This document shows positions 27,711-63,941 of a stretch of DNA of 64,000 bases, one piece after another; within the stretch, counting starts at the first letter, position 1, and each line of letters opens with the position of its first letter. The notes below the pieces were generated by a model. The model saw only the letters and a list, made by a program, of their open reading frames with translations, did not search any database and was not told the origin of the DNA. Position numbers and translations under genes: made by a program. The stretch lies in the NCBI RefSeq assembly GCF_000007005.1, contig NC_002754.1. The stretch is one strand, 5' to 3'. This DNA is from Saccharolobus solfataricus P2. GTDB lineage: Archaea > Thermoproteota > Thermoprotei_A > Sulfolobales > Sulfolobaceae.

Positions 27711-29105
27711 ATGCTTAAGGACGATATCCTAAAATTACTAAAGGAGGATGCGGAGTTTAGAAAACAAGTAGAGGAAATATTAGGTATTTCATTTATAAAT
27801 GTGACTCTAGCCGACTTAAAGGATATATTGAAAGGGTTATTAGCATCAATGGATAAACTAAAGAGTTCTGTAGATCAGCTGGTTGATGCTCAAAGAAGGG
27901 CGGAAGAAAGAATAGCGAAGCTTGAAAATGCAGTGGAGCAACTGGTTGAGGCGCAAAAGAGGACTGATGAGAGAATAACTAAATTGGAGGAGTCTACGAA
28001 GAAGTTGGAGCAAGCTGTACAAGAGCTTATTGAGGCTCAGAAAAAACATGATGAGAGAATAACTAAATTGGAGGAGTCTACGAAGAAGTTGGAGCAAGCT
28101 GTACAAGAGCTTATTGAGGCTCAGAAAAAACATGATGAGAGAATAACTAAATTGGAGGAGTCTACGAAGAAGTTGGAGCAAGCTGTACAAGAGCTTATTG
28201 AGGCTCAGAAAAAACATGATGAGAGAATAACTAAATTGGAGGAGTCTACGAAGAAGTTGGAGCAAGCTGTACAAGAGCTTATTGAGGCTCAGAAAAAACA
28301 TGATGAGAGAATAACTAAATTGGAGGAGTCTACGAAGAAGTTGGAGCAAGCTGTACAAGAGCTTATTGAGGCTCAGAAAAAACATGATGAGAGAATAACT
28401 AAATTGGAGGAGTCTACGAAGAAGTTGGAGCAAGCTGTACAAGAGCTTATTGAGGCTCAGAAAAAACATGATGAGAGAATAACTAAATTGGAGGAGTCTA
28501 TACAGAAATTGGTTGATGCTCAAAGAAGGGCGGAAGAAAGAATAGCGAAGCTTGAAAATGCAGTGGAGCAACTGGTTGAGGCGCAAAAGAGGACTGATGA
28601 GAGAATAACTAAATTGGAGGAGGTTACTATGAAATTAGTTGAATCTCAATTAGGTATGCAAAATGAGATTAGAGAGTTAAGGAAAGCTTTAGGAAGTATG
28701 GGTAAAAGGTGGGGAAGGGATTTTGAAAAGCTAATAATTGAAATAGTCGACGAGTTAGCTAAGCAAGAAGGACTAGATTTAAAGTACGTTAATAAGTTCA
28801 CTTACAAGGATGATAATGGATTATTTGGTCTTAAAGGTGTTGAATATGATGTTGATCTCTTGATAAAGGACACTAAAGTGTATTTGATAGAGATTAAGTC
28901 CTATGTAGAGAAAGATGATGTGAACTGGGCTGCACATAAATTCAATGTGATAGAAAAGGCTTTAGGTCTAAAGAATACTATCAAAATGATATTTGCAGTT
29001 GATGCTACAAATTTAGCAACAAAGAAGGGTGAAGAGTTGGGAATTAAAGTCGTATACGGAAGTCAATCCGAGGAGGAAGAGAAAGGAGAAGTAAAGGTAG
29101 GTTGA
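27711..29105 (+). CDS. Long coiled-coil protein with C-terminal PD-(D/E)XK nuclease-like domain
   Basis: Heptad repeats; C-terminal G..FE, DVD...EIKS motif. Confidence 0.8.
   Translation: MLKDDILKLLKEDAEFRKQVEEILGISFINVTLADLKDILKGLLASMDKLKSSVDQLVDAQRRAEERIAKLENAVEQLVEAQKRTDERITKLEESTKKLEQAVQELIEAQKKHDERITKLEESTKKLEQAVQELIEAQKKHDERITKLEESTKKLEQAVQELIEAQKKHDERITKLEESTKKLEQAVQELIEAQKKHDERITKLEESTKKLEQAVQELIEAQKKHDERITKLEESTKKLEQAVQELIEAQKKHDERITKLEESIQKLVDAQRRAEERIAKLENAVEQLVEAQKRTDERITKLEEVTMKLVESQLGMQNEIRELRKALGSMGKRWGRDFEKLIIEIVDELAKQEGLDLKYVNKFTYKDDNGLFGLKGVEYDVDLLIKDTKVYLIEIKSYVEKDDVNWAAHKFNVIEKALGLKNTIKMIFAVDATNLATKKGEELGIKVVYGSQSEEEEKGEVKVG
27966..28500 (+). repeat. Six perfect 84-bp tandem repeats plus a partial seventh, inside the CDS
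   Basis: Unit starts at 27966, 28050, 28134, 28218, 28302, 28386, 28470; encodes DERITKLEESTKKLEQAVQELIEAQKKH. Confidence 0.95.
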
Positions 29106-36285: not shown

Positions 36286-37146
36286 CTAAATATTTGAAAA
36301 CTTCTTGAAGGCATCATCTAGTGAGAACCTCCTAATACTTATTATCTCGATTCCATTATCATCTAACTTATCTACTATCTCCCTTAACTTACCTTTAACC
36401 TTTATATAAGGTCCTTCAAGTATTCCTCCCAATAATTTCAAAGCTCTATCAGTATCGTCTACCATTACGTAAATTTCTTCCTCTTCGGTATCGCTTAAAG
36501 CCTTGTTCATCCTGCCTGAGTATGTAATTCTTCCGTCATTAATAAATATTACATCAGTTATAACTTTTTCGAGCTCTGAGAGTATATGAGATGAAATGAA
36601 AAACGTTACACCATTTTTCCTATTCAACTCCTTCACTACCTCATAAAACTCTATTCTAAAGGAGGGATCTAGATTGGCAGTGGGTTCGTCTGCTATTATC
36701 AACTCAACATCCTTTATTAATGCAGCTACTAATTGAACTCTTTGGGCTAAACCAGAGGATAGTTGATAAAGCCTCTTATTAAGGTGAGGAGTTAACTTAA
36801 ATTCCTCAATTAGATAGTTAATTATCTCCCTCTTTTTCCCATAAACATTTCCCAGATCCATCAAATATTCCCCTACTGTGTTCTCTTGAGGATGAATTAA
36901 GTTAGTGAAAATAACTGAAATTCTCTCCATGACCTTTGGGTTATCCCAAGGATCTTCACCAAATACTTTAACAAACCCTCCGTCCTTTCTTAACAACCCA
37001 GAAAGTATTTTTATTGTAGTCGTTTTTCCAGCACCATTTGGTCCAATAAAACCAGTTATTGATCCACTTCTGAGTTTAAAACTAACGCCCTTAAGTACTT
37101 CTTTACCAGCAAACTTTTTCCTTAAATCCTCAACTTCAATAGTCAT
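36286..37146 (-). CDS. ABC transporter ATP-binding protein (exporter type)
   Basis: [20 protein letters not shown]. Confidence 0.93.
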
Positions 37147-37186
37147 GTAATATAAATAGAAGAAAAAGGATAATTTATTATTTATT

Positions 37187-38941
37187 TTAAACTATCACAG
37201 CTTTCACTAACCCTGGAGGAGTATCTATCGGCAACCCTTTCCTAACTCCCAGTTTATAGGCCAATAAGTGTAACGGTATTACATTGCTTATGGGAGTTAA
37301 ATCCCTAGTAGCCTTTATACTTTTCATATCACCATCTTCAGCAACGGTCACAATTACATCTCCTCTTTCCTTTATAGATCTAATAACCTTGTTATATAAA
37401 TCCTCAGCCTCCACAGGTTTTATTAAAATTACGGGGTAACCTTTATTTGTTAGAACAATGGGACCGTGGAGGAGTTCTCCCAGCTGAATCCCCTCTGCGT
37501 GAGTCATCGAAGCTTCCTTAAACTTCAAAGCTCCTTCTAAGGCTATGGGGTAATTTATACCACTACTCGAAATGTATAAGCTTTCCTTGTCTAATTTAGG
37601 AGCCAATTTCTCTGCCTCTTTCTCCATCTCCGGTAACCTTACCATTAACTGTTTAGCCAATTCTTCAATCTCACTTTTTAACGAACTGATCTCACTCCTA
37701 TCGTTTTTACCAGAGTGAAGTCCAGTGTATAGCGAAAGCACTTTTAATACTACAATAGTTGAAGTGAAAGTTTTTGTCGCTGGTACAGCCATCTCTGGCC
37801 CAGCAGTTATTGGTAAGTACACGTTAGATTCTAAGGCTAATCTTGAACCTACAGAGTTGGTTATACCTAATATTACAGCCCCTCTTTGCTTAGCCATTTT
37901 AATACTCCTTATAACATCACTTGTCTCCCCACTTTGACTTATAGCAATAATTACCGAACCAGTAGTCACGTTTTTCAAGGCGTAATAGGGAAACTCCGCT
38001 GCACTTACAACATTAACATTTAGGCTAATTTCAGAAAAGTAATATGATGAGATAAATCCAGCGTGAAGACTAGTCCCATTACCTATTATATAGACGTTCT
38101 TGGCACCATATACTATCATTGAGGCTAAGGAAAGGTACTTTTCCATTAGAGAGTTAAATGAGTTTATTAACGCTTGTGGGATATCGTATATCTCCTTTAA
38201 CATGAAGTGTGGAAATCCACCCTTTTCAGCGATCTCCTCCTTATATTTAACTCTCTTAATTTCCGGTTTTACCTCATTACCTTCAATATTATACACTTGC
38301 ACATCATTCCAAGAGATTACTGCCACAGTATTTTCTGGCATTATTATCGCATTCTCAGCAAAACCGCTCAAAGAGGGTAAATCGCTAGAAACGTATTTAC
38401 ACTCTTGTGTGATACCTATCATCAAGGGTTGGCCAGAGTTAATTGCGAATATTTTATCAATGTCTATGGTTACAAAAACCAGAGAGTAAATGCCCTTTAC
38501 CCTTTTCATAACGTTTAATGATGAGTTTAGATAGTTTGTTGAATTCTCAAGTAAGTGGGGAATCACCTCAGCGTCAGTTGTAGAGACGAATTTATGTCCC
38601 TTCGCAATCAGATCTTCCCTAATTTTTTCGTAATCGTCAAGAATACCGTCCATTACAACTGCTATCTTCCCATTACAATCAGTCAGTGGGTGAGCGTTTT
38701 CCAAAGTTGGCCAACCCCTACTCGCATATCTAGTGTGACCTATTGCAACTCTTGCCTTGTCACTAACGCTTATCTCATTCTTTGAGATATTACCTAAAAT
38801 TTTCTTTATTACTAAGCTATCGTCTTCAAGGTAAGCAATACCAGCGCTATCATATCCCCTATAAATCAACTTCTTTAAACCCTTGTTAATAATTGAAACA
38901 TCAATGGAATCCTTGCATACGAAAGCGAAAATTCCTCCCAT
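37187..38941 (-). CDS. glmS: GlmS-like protein (glutaminase-like plus two SIS domains) lacking the catalytic Cys1
   Basis: N-term [36 protein letters not shown]. Confidence 0.8.
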
Positions 38942-38975
38942 ACTTAAATTTTAGTTTTGGTTATAAAAAGGAATT

Positions 38976-39467
38976 CTAACCCTCATTTCCCTGCTTAATC
39001 GAGGTAAATACACCTAAAATCAGACTATACACTTCTGGGTGAACTATAGACAAATTGCTGAATAGTTTTCTAATCTGTATTGGTTCAATATTATTTAATA
39101 TTTTCATAACGATTTTTATTGGAATGTTAATTTCCCTTAACTTATTTTCAATTATTCTCTTTACATCATCTTTAACCTCAAATACCTTTAACGTATTATA
39201 CGCTGTAACACTTCTGAGAGCTCTAGCCTTCCATACATCTCTATGGTTAACAATTGCCAAAACGATCGGAATTCCTAGATCAATATCACCCAGTTCCTCG
39301 TATATGTAGTAAAGATAATATGCAGTATATACTTCATTTCCTATTGCGCTCTGTAAGATTATAGCAAGCTCAATGTACTTTTTAACTTTCTCCTCATCTT
39401 TCTTAATCCTATTGGCGATTATGGGGACAACGTAATAATACTCTCTCCTAAACTTCTCTAAATCCAT
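38976..39467 (-). CDS. Degenerate Cas3''-like HD-fold protein (metal ligands lost)
   Basis: LAIILQSAIG where Cas3'' has LHDxGK; NEVYTAYY for HE..SA; LAIVNH; coupled to a Cas3'-like gene. Confidence 0.6.
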   Translation of the reverse strand: MDLEKFRREYYYVVPIIANRIKKDEEKVKKYIELAIILQSAIGNEVYTAYYLYYIYEELGDIDLGIPIVLAIVNHRDVWKARALRSVTAYNTLKVFEVKDDVKRIIENKLREINIPIKIVMKILNNIEPIQIRKLFSNLSIVHPEVYSLILGVFTSIKQGNEG

Positions 39468-40852
39468 TCTTCCACATCTCTGGCCTTTAACCCTAAAAAC
39501 ACCTTCTTTTTTCCTTCTTCCTCAACATAATTCTTATAAGCCCTTGCTAAATTCCTCTTAAGCCATGAAACACCTCCGCCTTCTAACCAATTATAAACTA
39601 TCTTAGAGCATTTTTCTCCATCAGTAAAGTACGTGTAAACGCAGCTATTTCCGTAGTATAATATCTTCTTTTTGTTCTCGTATACAAACTCGGGAGGTAC
39701 TGTAGTTATTTTCTCTTTATCAGTAAATAGATCGACTGTTACGAAATCACTGAAGACTTCTGTCACCTTCTCGAACTCCCTTCTATCCATTAAGTGGCTT
39801 ATTTCACTTAGCCTTTTTATAAGCCTTTCATCAATGTTAGGCTTTAAGACCGTCTTGTTAGCATATCCCATCTTTCCATTACAGCCAAAGGGATGTTTTA
39901 AGCATACTTTGATATTTGAAAGTAGATTAAGAGTACTTTCAGTCACTGTATCGTAATTATCCCTATCAATCCAGACGTAGATCTTATCCTTATCGTTAAT
40001 AATTCCACTTCTAGCTACAATAGTTGGTAATGATGAAATTTCGCTCACCACGTTAAACCTAGTAGGCATAATTTTAGGTGTAATAGTCACTTTGCATTCA
40101 TCACTACTATTAAGTAAACATACCTCAGTATTTCTTTCCTCCCTTAACTTTCTGTATAATCTCAACGCCTTTTCCCAAGAATTTACGAAAAGCGTAAATG
40201 GTTCCTTTACCTTAAATACCTCTTCACCTTTAATGATCTCATAATCTAAATCCCTAATGTCAAAATCCTCAATTAATTCAATCACTTCGTAACTACCCCT
40301 ACACTGATAATATCCCTCACCTTTCTTCACGCAATCCCTACCCTCAACCGCTTGCCCATATTCATTAACTATTGAAATAGATACCACTCTTCTATTTCTA
40401 AATCTACTTACTATCTCCTCCTCAAAGAATACCGAAGGTGTTGAAGTAGAGAAAATTGCGTTAATGCCATTCCTCGCCAATTCGTCAGCTGCAGCAATTA
40501 AAGCCTTATCTGGCATCATTCGATACTCATCTAAGATGACTAGTGAGGTAAGGATGTTAAATCTTGGGATTTCAGAAATTGCGCTACTGTAAAGGTTTAA
40601 AAAGAATTTACTGAAATGTAGTTGTGTATCCTCATAATCGTTAGGAACTACGCGAGTTAATCTTGAAAAGTTATTAGTCATATGTTTTGATAAATAGTTT
40701 TCAAGTGGTGAAATTACATCTTTTAAATAACCGATGGGTAAATTCAAGATGAAGTTAACATCATCGCATATTGAAAATTTTCTTCTGTTAATTTCCCTCT
40801 CAGTCTCCTTACAGTTTAAAAGCTCAAGGACTTTTCCTATCATTCTTAACAC
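39458..40852 (-). CDS. Degenerate Cas3'-like SF2 helicase (type I-A-like, predicted inactive)
   Basis: [11 protein letters not shown] (motif I), RLTRVVP (Ia), [18 protein letters not shown] (II), FSTST (III), [16 protein letters not shown] (IV), IVARSG (VI). Confidence 0.7.
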
Positions 40853-41298
40853 TTTATGTCAAATGAAATCTCGAGTAACTGTTTACTATTCCTATATCTC
40901 CAATAGTCCTTGATGATCTCTCCAATCTCAGAGGTAAACTTAGTATGTTGCTTATTGCAAGCATTAATACTCCAATCTGGTATTACCACAATGCTTAACT
41001 CCCTAACCTCAGCTGAAATAAGAAAGAGATCGTAGATCTCATCTCCATATTTCCTTTCAGCTTCTTCCCTAGGTAAAACCTCAATTATTATTGGAAGGTT
41101 TTTTCTAACCTTCTCGTTAGCCAATTCAAAGACCTTATCCATTTCCTGATCGCTAGGTTTCCTCTCAAACTTTACCGTTAATCTCCCATGATTGCTATTA
41201 ACGTAAGTGCTTGCAGTCCATTTGGCACCCAAAACTTTCCTCACAGCTCCTTTGACCACATGTAAGGCGGTGTGAGTGCGAATCTCAACTTGATCCAT
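40846..41298 (-). CDS. alaXS: AlaX-S free-standing alanyl-tRNA editing protein
   Basis: RTHTALH (HxxxH) and ACNKQH (CxxxH); very like Pyrococcus AlaX-S. Confidence 0.9.
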
Positions 41299-41333
41299 GT
41301 CAAATATATTATCCTCAAAGCCTTTTATATAGT

Positions 41334-62699: not shown

Positions 62700-63941
62700 T
62701 CATGATTCTTTCCCTATCATCTCCCCAGCAAATCTCTCCTTAACTAAGAACTTCCATAAAGGGATTAATGTAATCTCCTTTCCGTTTCTAATTTCCTTCC
62801 CCTCCCTATCCCACGTTATGATAATTAGCTTATAGTCCTTAAACCTCTCAGAAAATCTTACCAATCCCTTATACTCCCTATCATCTATTCCACCTTCATC
62901 ATACGTAACTTGTATTGCAAACTTATCCTTAATTATAAAATCAACCTCCGCATTACCATTTGAATAATAATAAACTTCCTGACCATACCTCTTATATAAC
63001 TCTAGAAAGACTAGATTTTCTATCATTTTCCCCATCTGGAGTCTCTTATACGTGTTAAAAAGCCCAGTATCAATTACATAAACCTTTCTAGGTAACGTGT
63101 ACCTTTCAAGGGATTTTCCAGTAAATCTCTTCACGAACAGAAAGAGGTATGCGTTAGATAGACAATAGAAGTAGTTTTCAACGGACTGGTGAGATAGATT
63201 AAACGCATTTCCAACTCTCCTAGTCGACACCTCCTTACCAATATTCTCTAATAGAAAGTCAGCTAACCCCTTTACATCTTTTCTAGTCTTGCATCTAATT
63301 ATAACATCCCTTGTAATGATGTCAGAATAGAGGTTCCTTAAATACTCGTTTTTATCGAATTTGAAGGTCTCTGGAAAACCTCCTTGTTGTAAATAGTTTC
63401 TTAACTCTTCTTTTAGCCTAGCAATACCCCTAGTGGTCTCCTCTACTTTAACGTCCTTATACCTTAAGTACTCCTTAAATGAGAAGGGAAAAACGAGGAA
63501 GTCCATATGCCTCCCAGTCAAGTAAGTTGCCATCTCTGAACTCATTAGTCTAGCGTTACTTCCAGTAACTATTACTGGGTATATTTCCCTTATTCTAGAA
63601 ACGAAGAGTTCCCATCCCTTAACGTTTTGTATTTCATCTAGTATTATTACCTCAATTTTCTTTTTTATCTGATAGCCAGCCTCTAAAAATTTATTCAATT
63701 CGTTAGCCTTTATTCCCGATAACCTCTCGTCATCGAAATCGACTCTTAAGATCTCTTTGCCTTTAGTGAGTTGAACTGTAAAGATTGATTTCCCAGCCCT
63801 CCTTGGACCAGTTATCAAATAAGCGTTGTTATACGTTATTGAGTAGTTATAGTGCCTCGTTATGATCCTCTCTTTTCTTAACTTATCGTTTAGGAAAGAT
63901 TCTTGGTCTAGGAGTATTCTCTTTATCTCTTCTACTTCCAC
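62700..63941 (-). CDS. AAA+ ATPase (AAA_14 plus DUF4143 type)
   Basis: GPRRAGKS, ILDEIQ, TGSN, GGFPE, KVYVIDTG, EVDF. Confidence 0.9.
   Translation of the reverse strand: MEVEEIKRILLDQESFLNDKLRKERIITRHYNYSITYNNAYLITGPRRAGKSIFTVQLTKGKEILRVDFDDERLSGIKANELNKFLEAGYQIKKKIEVIILDEIQNVKGWELFVSRIREIYPVIVTGSNARLMSSEMATYLTGRHMDFLVFPFSFKEYLRYKDVKVEETTRGIARLKEELRNYLQQGGFPETFKFDKNEYLRNLYSDIITRDVIIRCKTRKDVKGLADFLLENIGKEVSTRRVGNAFNLSHQSVENYFYCLSNAYLFLFVKRFTGKSLERYTLPRKVYVIDTGLFNTYKRLQMGKMIENLVFLELYKRYGQEVYYYSNGNAEVDFIIKDKFAIQVTYDEGGIDDREYKGLVRFSERFKDYKLIIITWDREGKEIRNGKEITLIPLWKFLVKERFAGEMIGKES

Follow-up and report, generated by a model that had tools for sequence, protein, structure and literature searches.

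Why should two Cas3-like proteins without catalytic motifs be kept directly behind a tRNA-editing gene, apart from any CRISPR locus? The question is raised by a stretch of 64,000 nucleotides (nt) of the Saccharolobus solfataricus P2 genome (contig NC_002754.1 of assembly GCF_000007005.1; hereafter the window), in which three minus-strand open reading frames (ORFs) follow one another: alaXS, a 464-amino acid (aa) ORF and a 163-aa ORF. We refer to the products of the last two as dCas3' and dCas3''. As set out below, the pair in Saccharolobus consists of folded, selected and non-catalytic descendants of Cas3' and Cas3'' and probably works by binding rather than cutting. Our leading reading of its function, which we hold tentatively, is that it is an exapted pair, housed in the alaXS unit, that modulates the resident Cascade from the Cas3 docking site.

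Neither Pfam nor single-sequence PDB searches gave a match for the two ORFs, and their homology came to light only with profiles specific to CRISPR or to the family and with structure. Using PADLOC, the 464-aa protein matched the Cas3a1 profile at 2.3e-65 and the 163-aa protein matched Cas3a2 at 2.3e-27. A dCas3' family profile found Cas3 helicases in the PDB (8wtk at 2.9e-45, and the P. furiosus type I-A Cas3, 7tr8, at 1.6e-32), whereas a profile of five dCas3'' orthologues found no Cas3'' there, although dCas3'' did align with the Cas3'' of an S. tokodaii I-A operon in hhalign (96.9%). AlphaFold2 (AF2) models of both proteins were confident, with mean predicted local distance difference test (pLDDT) values of 84.3 for dCas3' and 84.2 for dCas3''. 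In Foldseek the dCas3' model had the 8wtk Cas3 helicase as its best match (E 1.4e-12, template modelling (TM) score 0.62), followed by T. fusca Cas3, while the sole confident match of the dCas3'' model was 7tra_Q from the P. furiosus type I-A Cascade (probability 1.00, TM 0.54, E only 0.034); this chain has 219 residues, the size expected of Cas3'', and its subunit is not named in the Foldseek output. Both proteins, we conclude, are genuine type I-A homologues, the 464-aa one of Cas3' and the 163-aa one of Cas3''.

Set against active type I-A Cas3' proteins (arCOG01444/TIGR01587; S. tokodaii ST0032, Acidianus manzaensis, P. furiosus 7TR8), dCas3' is alike over its full length, with 37-42% identity to the nearest active member, and shares with them the RecA1-RecA2-C-terminal domain (CTD) fold, the N-terminal segment, Cys pairs, a CTD motif and an overlapping downstream cas3'' gene. 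Unlike them, it is ~90-120 residues shorter, lies outside a cas operon and has no Pfam helicase domain, and it falls short of the thresholds of the curated families (TIGR01587 cas3_core, 18.7 bits against a cutoff of 102.45, and Pfam DEAD, Helicase_C and Cas3-like_C_2). Likewise, dCas3'' resembles type I-A Cas3'' (arCOG01443/Pfam Cas3_HD; 7TRA chain Q) in homology, in its all-helical core and in its place downstream of cas3' with overlapping frames, but has 163 aa against 212-280 aa. Eight cysteines of dCas3' (C14, C29, C174, C184, C245, C253, C317 and C324) are invariant or nearly so in the dead and active Cas3' of this lineage, the C174/C184 segment being the most constrained part of dCas3', and the scaffold may be held together by zinc sites or disulfides that these residues form.

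Only 13 relatives came out of an exhaustive profile search against 1.8 billion representatives, and the closer ones are active Cas3' proteins encoded in canonical csa5-cas7-cas5-cas8a-cas3'-cas3'' operons. Aligned with these, dCas3' differs as follows: motif I has changed from PTGYGKT to PIGYLKD, motifs Ia and Ib are gone through deletions of ~45 residues, motif II has changed from DEYH to DEYR (DEYR or DEYQ across dead members) and motif III from SSATPS to STSTPS, motif IV is deleted, motif V has changed from TQVIEVGV to TPKIMPTR and motif VI from QRVGRVLR to ARSGII. Thus a working Walker A/DExH site and motifs Ia, Ib, IV, V and VI are all missing. In dCas3'' the N-terminal His and C-terminal Asp motifs are both cut off by truncation, FHDIGK has become LQSA together with a 14-residue deletion, GHE has become GNE and SHH has become NHR, so that the five metal-ligand motifs of the HD superfamily (H, HD, H, HH, D) are all absent in Saccharolobus. 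As a control, the active relatives matched Pfam DEAD, Helicase_C, Cas3-like_C_2 and Cas3_HD (weakly), whereas the window pair matched no Pfam helicase, Cas3_HD or HD domain. A few positions have none-the-less stayed invariant across dead and active members, namely K44 of Walker A, D108 and E109 of Walker B, and R281/G283 of motif VI. A preliminary description of this DNA, made by eye, had proposed that both ORFs keep the Cas3' and Cas3'' scaffolds while having lost catalytic residues; the profile and structure searches that it had set as a check did find Cas3, and every change in the helicase and HD motifs is visible in the alignments with active relatives.

The S. tengchongensis copies (L003:10001-11997) are intermediate. 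They keep PTVYGKT, the arginines of ERAGRALR and the LHDL dyad, have DEYQ at motif II and have lost the other motifs; against Pfam they gave a sub-threshold Cas3-like_C_2 match only. These intermediate motifs point to stepwise loss after relocation of the genes, and the S. tengchongensis orthologues may have residual nucleotide or metal binding.

Nothing else in the window belongs to a CRISPR-Cas system. No CRISPR array was found in the 64 kb with TRF, a direct-repeat search or searches for two Sulfolobus repeat sequences, and PADLOC, run on each of the 64 ORFs with 90 aa or more, recognised no cas family besides the two Cas3 profiles; Rfam gave no RNA family anywhere in the window. A complete type I-A system is therefore not present at the locus, the window having no array and no cas5, cas7, cas8a, csa5 or cas6. 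Three PADLOC matches were rejected. Those to 'Csx1' and 'Cas12f' both fall on one TnpB-type (IS200/IS605) ORF at 1184-2452 on the minus strand, which matches 'Csx1, found elsewhere' at 1.1e-21 along with numerous Cas12f profiles; the profile called Csx1 seems to be misnamed rather than to mark a real CARF protein. The third, between alaXS and the Cas11 type I-A small-subunit profile (E 0.002, residues 3-66), was taken as chance, given the clear homology of alaXS to the alanyl-tRNA synthetase (AlaRS) editing domain. The absence of an array and of Cascade genes, as first described, is thus borne out, and the term 'orphan' holds for the locus. It does not hold for the genome, since S. islandicus M.14.25 has both the dead pair and a full active I-A module elsewhere, and an active Cas3' of the same lineage is also recorded in S. 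solfataricus, S. shibatae and Sulfolobus sp. E5-1-F.

We then asked how far the pair is conserved. The gene order, with the MupG-like gene divergent from alaXS-dcas3'-dcas3''-glmS, is kept in S. islandicus, S. shibatae, Sulfolobus sp. E5-1-F, S. solfataricus and S. tengchongensis; these orthologue loci come from exact-protein look-ups, as a degenerate-pattern scan of genome contigs gave two distant loci from metagenome-assembled genomes only and missed the Sulfolobales. Proteins of S. islandicus match the product of the 464-aa ORF at 99% identity; dCas3' and dCas3'' of S. tengchongensis have only 50-57% identity, with synonymous sites saturated and frames intact. In a maximum-likelihood tree the five dead Cas3' proteins form one clade (100/100), sister to the Acidianus manzaensis Cas3' and nested among active Sulfolobales I-A Cas3', on a stem branch of 0.69. 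Monophyly and the long stem branch together indicate a single ancient relocation, after which the proteins changed fast and then settled into stasis.

Both genes are kept by purifying selection, with ratios of nonsynonymous to synonymous substitution (dN/dS) of about 0.1-0.2, far from neutral. Pairwise Nei-Gojobori estimates were 0.11-0.21 for dcas3' and 0.10-0.41, mostly 0.16-0.20, for dcas3'', compared with 0.06-0.15 for alaXS, glmS, the MupG-like gene and the ABC ATPase. Fisher tests gave p values of 1e-10 to 1e-43, with the exception of the closest dcas3'' pair (p = 0.06), which has too few changes. Constraint is spread along the whole of dCas3', being tightest in a Cys-rich hairpin (163-198) and part of the CTD (323-382) and weakest at the former motifs Ia/Ib and V/VI. 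The 90%-identity clusters of the two proteins contain 31 and 16 distinct sequences, nearly all of them full length. Exaptation rather than decay, as had been proposed, is supported by the conserved synteny, the intact frames and the dN/dS values; a lack of orthologues or neutral evolution, which the same proposal had listed as outcomes that would speak against it, was not what we found, dN/dS being well under 1.

Two observations concern the neighbouring genes. In S. solfataricus GCA_015654385.1 (L004:11895-14551) the ORFs of glmS (449 aa, elsewhere 584) and of the ABC ATPase (214 aa, elsewhere 286) are shortened, and the adjacent dead pair is intact. Furthermore, when positions 36286-38941 of the window are set against L005:11931-14550, on a contig that carries an S. 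solfataricus-type dCas3', the ABC ATPase gene is 100% identical in nucleotides; between the window and L005 the synonymous divergence (dS) is 0.22 for glmS and 0.69 for dcas3', which suggests that recombination between species produced a tract that stops close to the glmS/dcas3'' boundary.

Earlier records of these genes include those in the essential-genome study of S. islandicus M.16.4 (PMC6249222 supplement). There M164_0463 is named 'Cas3, arCOG01444', with 14 unique insertions and a log2 fold change of 0.00, and M164_0464 is named "Cas3'', arCOG01443, HD superfamily nuclease", with 17 insertions, and both are scored as non-essential. The alaXS orthologue, M164_0462, is alaX2, a Ser-tRNA(Ala) deacylase AlaX (arCOG01256) that is likewise non-essential and has been deleted genetically, so all three genes are individually dispensable in culture. 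The same supplement gives the orthologues as SSO1271/1270/1269 and SiRe_0420/0421/0422. IMG and UniRef also carry Cas3 or HD names on some copies. Full-text searches on the locus tags found no paper on inactivation, orphan location or conservation and no transcript or expression data, and CRISPR classification and Sulfolobales reviews make no mention of the pair. The statement in the preliminary description that no account of this module was known thus needs qualifying: the family assignment is already on record in arCOG, IMG and UniRef, but we found no paper discussing the pair, and its inactivation, orphan location and conservation were not described in the literature searched.

The layout of the locus shows how closely the three genes are joined. 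All lie on the minus strand at exactly the positions first listed: alaXS at 40846-41298 (150 aa), dcas3' at 39458-40852, encoding a catalytically inert derivative of the type I-A Cas3' superfamily 2 (SF2) helicase, and dcas3'' at 38976-39467, encoding an inert derivative of the type I-A Cas3'' HD nuclease. Both of the overlaps first described were seen. The alaXS stop codon TAA (40846-40848) falls within GTGTTAAgaATG, so that a dcas3' start at GTG 40852 (464 aa) overlaps it by 7 nt, while a start at ATG 40843 (461 aa) begins 2 nt past it; dcas3' and dcas3'' overlap by 10 nt (39458-39467). The start context GTGTTAAG of dcas3' is kept in all five species, and we favour the GTG because it is the annotated start of S. 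tengchongensis dCas3' and because the encoded Leu-Arg corresponds, in the alignment, to the N-termini of active Cas3'. The neighbours, by Pfam and NCBIfam, are metabolic: the MupG-like gene, an oligopeptide ABC transporter, glmS and the ABC ATPase.

The leading gene, alaXS, appears from its translation to encode an intact tRNA-editing deacylase. AlaXS, a free-standing homologue of the AlaRS editing domain, matched the NCBIfam AlaRS editing region at 1.1e-22 and AlaXM at 1.4e-17, has intact zinc/catalytic motifs (H9xxxH13 and C114xxxH118), is about 150 aa long without a C-terminal domain, as an AlaX-S should be, and its gene has dN/dS of 0.06-0.12. S. solfataricus AlaX homologues hydrolyse misacylated tRNA(Ala) (PMC6249222 supplement). 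Among free-standing AlaX-S tRNA(Ala) editing proteins (arCOG01256) it is a typical member with nothing unusual in the protein; what sets it apart from other AlaX-S is its unusual operon partners, a linkage limited to Saccharolobus and S. tengchongensis.

Since a scan for promoters and terminators of the bacterial type tells nothing about an archaeon, archaeal TATA elements were read by eye. At 41323-41330 on the minus strand, a TATA-like box, ATATAAAA, lies 24 nt upstream of the alaXS ATG in the 35-nt divergent intergenic region common to alaXS and the MupG-like gene, and its ATATAAA is invariant in the five species; it is the predicted promoter of a leaderless alaXS-dcas3'-dcas3'' transcript. 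In the 34-nt gap from the dCas3'' stop to glmS there is a T5 run followed by a TATA-like box, TTTTTATAA (38961-38969, minus strand). This stretch is kept in four Saccharolobus-group loci, S. tengchongensis having a 132-nt spacer instead, and the T-run probably ends the three-gene unit, with glmS a separate unit under its own putative promoter. As the gene overlaps leave no room for internal promoters, co-transcription of alaXS, dcas3' and dcas3'' as one unit between the TATA box and the T-run would follow. In the orthologue table of the transposon sequencing (Tn-seq) study (PMC6249222), alaX is present without a counterpart of the pair in S. acidocaldarius and M. sedula, and the S. tokodaii alaX is at an unlinked tag. 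This occurrence of alaX without a linked pair in other Sulfolobaceae disfavours a mechanistic tie between the pair and AlaX-S, and the linkage most likely reflects use of the alaXS promoter rather than a shared mechanism.

We propose the following sequence of events. A Sulfolobales type I-A cas3'-cas3'' copy would have been relocated behind alaXS anciently, before the split of Saccharolobus and 'Sulfolobus' tengchongensis; in Saccharolobus the relocated copy would then have shed all the catalytic motifs of the ATPase/helicase and of the HD nuclease, several of them through deletion, and kept its folds, purifying selection having held it since before that split. The two proteins would now act non-enzymatically, most probably as a heterodimer that uses the ancestral Cas3'-Cas3'' interface, a pairing that we infer because both partners have been retained with overlapping frames. 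In T. tenax, Cas3' and Cas3'' are integral to the type I-A Cascade and needed for its stability (PMC4005679), which means that a structural role can outlive catalysis, and it is because of this structural role that we favour an inert stand-in on the resident Cascade. By analogy, the pair would take the Cas3 docking site of that complex and so modulate interference, as a brake, as part of a complex that binds without cutting, or as a decoy. A stronger version is that the pair is a constitutive alternative 'Cas3 module' that fills the slot of the active helicase and nuclease and leaves a Cascade that binds its target without cutting, giving silencing in the manner of CRISPR interference (CRISPRi), restraint of autoimmunity or of primed adaptation, or a decoy that takes up viral anti-Cas3 factors; this we regard as rather unlikely, although, if true, it would be the first natural dominant-negative Cas3.

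Several points weigh against docking on Cascade, or against parts of the scheme around it. The dead proteins have only 28% and 26% identity to the resident active Cas3' and Cas3'', which makes docking on the present-day Cascade uncertain. The motifs that contact nucleic acid (Ia, Ib, IV and V) are deleted or destroyed. The description 'dead' may not cover the whole clade, S. tengchongensis still having the GKT, DE, RxGRxxR arginines and HD dyad. Co-transcription is a prediction from sequence, and Tn-seq in rich medium showed no fitness effect of disrupting dcas3' or dcas3'' (PMC6249222). One further objection was dropped: from the Tn-seq mapping to ST0032/ST2639, the resident S. islandicus I-A Cas3' had seemed to be a separate lineage, but cluster membership and locus L011 place it in the same Sulfolobales radiation.

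The strongest rival is that the inert pair was recruited outside CRISPR altogether, as a binding or scaffold module, possibly working with AlaX-S in tRNA or translation quality control or in envelope sugar metabolism (glmS, MupG-like). Such a CRISPR-independent role we rank just below the Cascade model and nearly as likely. It fits a locus that is housekeeping or metabolic with no defence island, the tight coupling to alaXS in five species, the strong divergence from the resident Cas3'/Cas3'', and the long stem branch, which would suit a change of function. Yet AlaX does not need the pair, as alaX without it elsewhere shows, the canonical nucleic-acid-binding motifs have been lost, alaX2 and both dead genes are individually dispensable, and no partner is suggested by any data.

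Very improbable, in our judgement, is that the proteins are still enzymes with non-canonical sites, or nucleotide- or metal-dependent switches. The invariant Walker A, Walker B and motif VI residues and the motifs kept in S. tengchongensis would be in keeping with this. In Saccharolobus, however, the P-loop reads GYLKD, with other residues in place of both the Gly that precedes the Lys and the Thr that binds Mg; deletion has taken motifs Ia, Ib and IV, motif V has been destroyed, and the arginine finger is missing. None of the HD ligands is left, truncation accounting for two of the five motifs, and no Pfam helicase or HD domain is detectable. Least probable of all, and largely refuted, is that the pair is functionless, left over from a type I-A module that decayed, with frames open by chance or through selection on something other than the proteins: the loss of every catalytic motif, the non-essential status in culture and dN/dS somewhat above that of the neighbours would suit it, but dN/dS is low and significant in all pairs but the closest dCas3'' one, frames are intact across lineages with saturated synonymous sites, the many distinct sequences are nearly all full length, the pair is intact in the S. 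solfataricus strain with shortened glmS and ABC ATPase, and both AF2 models are those of well-folded proteins.

The inert pair in the alaXS unit has parallels among exapted or inactivated CRISPR derivatives, such as the Cas3-less type I-F3/I-B2 CRISPR-associated transposons (CASTs), type IV systems, the Streptomyces I-E system with a STAND NTPase, haloarchaeal HRAMP, and inactivated Cas10 and Cas12 (PMC8730458, PMC12669027), in that a Cas component has been selected after losing its interference chemistry or context. Those systems keep the CRISPR RNA (crRNA)-binding effector and drop or replace Cas3, whereas here a split, inert Cas3 module stands alone, away from effector genes and array.

Two other features of the window were observed. 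Within an ORF at 27711-29105 on the plus strand, an 84-nt (28-aa) unit is repeated in tandem 6.4 times at positions 27965-28500, with 100% DNA identity among the copies and more diverged ones upstream, which suggests a very recent expansion; the product is a coiled-coil-like protein of 464 aa with weak SMC/ZorA-type PADLOC matches only. At 62700-63941 on the minus strand, an ORF matches the PADLOC candidate defence family PDC-S01 at 1.1e-93 and is the only strong family-specific defence candidate in the window besides the dead pair, the rest looking like generic ATPase, coiled-coil and TnpB matches.

For genome annotation, the active cas content of the organism is overstated wherever a pipeline gives these genes the name 'Cas3' or 'HD nuclease'. 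The exaptation of CRISPR parts is a recognised theme, and the present case reverses it, with the Cas3 module kept and the effector absent. If the pair still engages Cascade, it would reveal how type I interference can be tuned or disarmed in nature; otherwise, a Cas3 scaffold would have been put to a new use. Saccharolobus is a genus with well-developed archaeal CRISPR genetics; for S. islandicus REY15A or M.16.4 there are genetic tools, assays of interference and viable insertion mutants, and the question is directly testable there.

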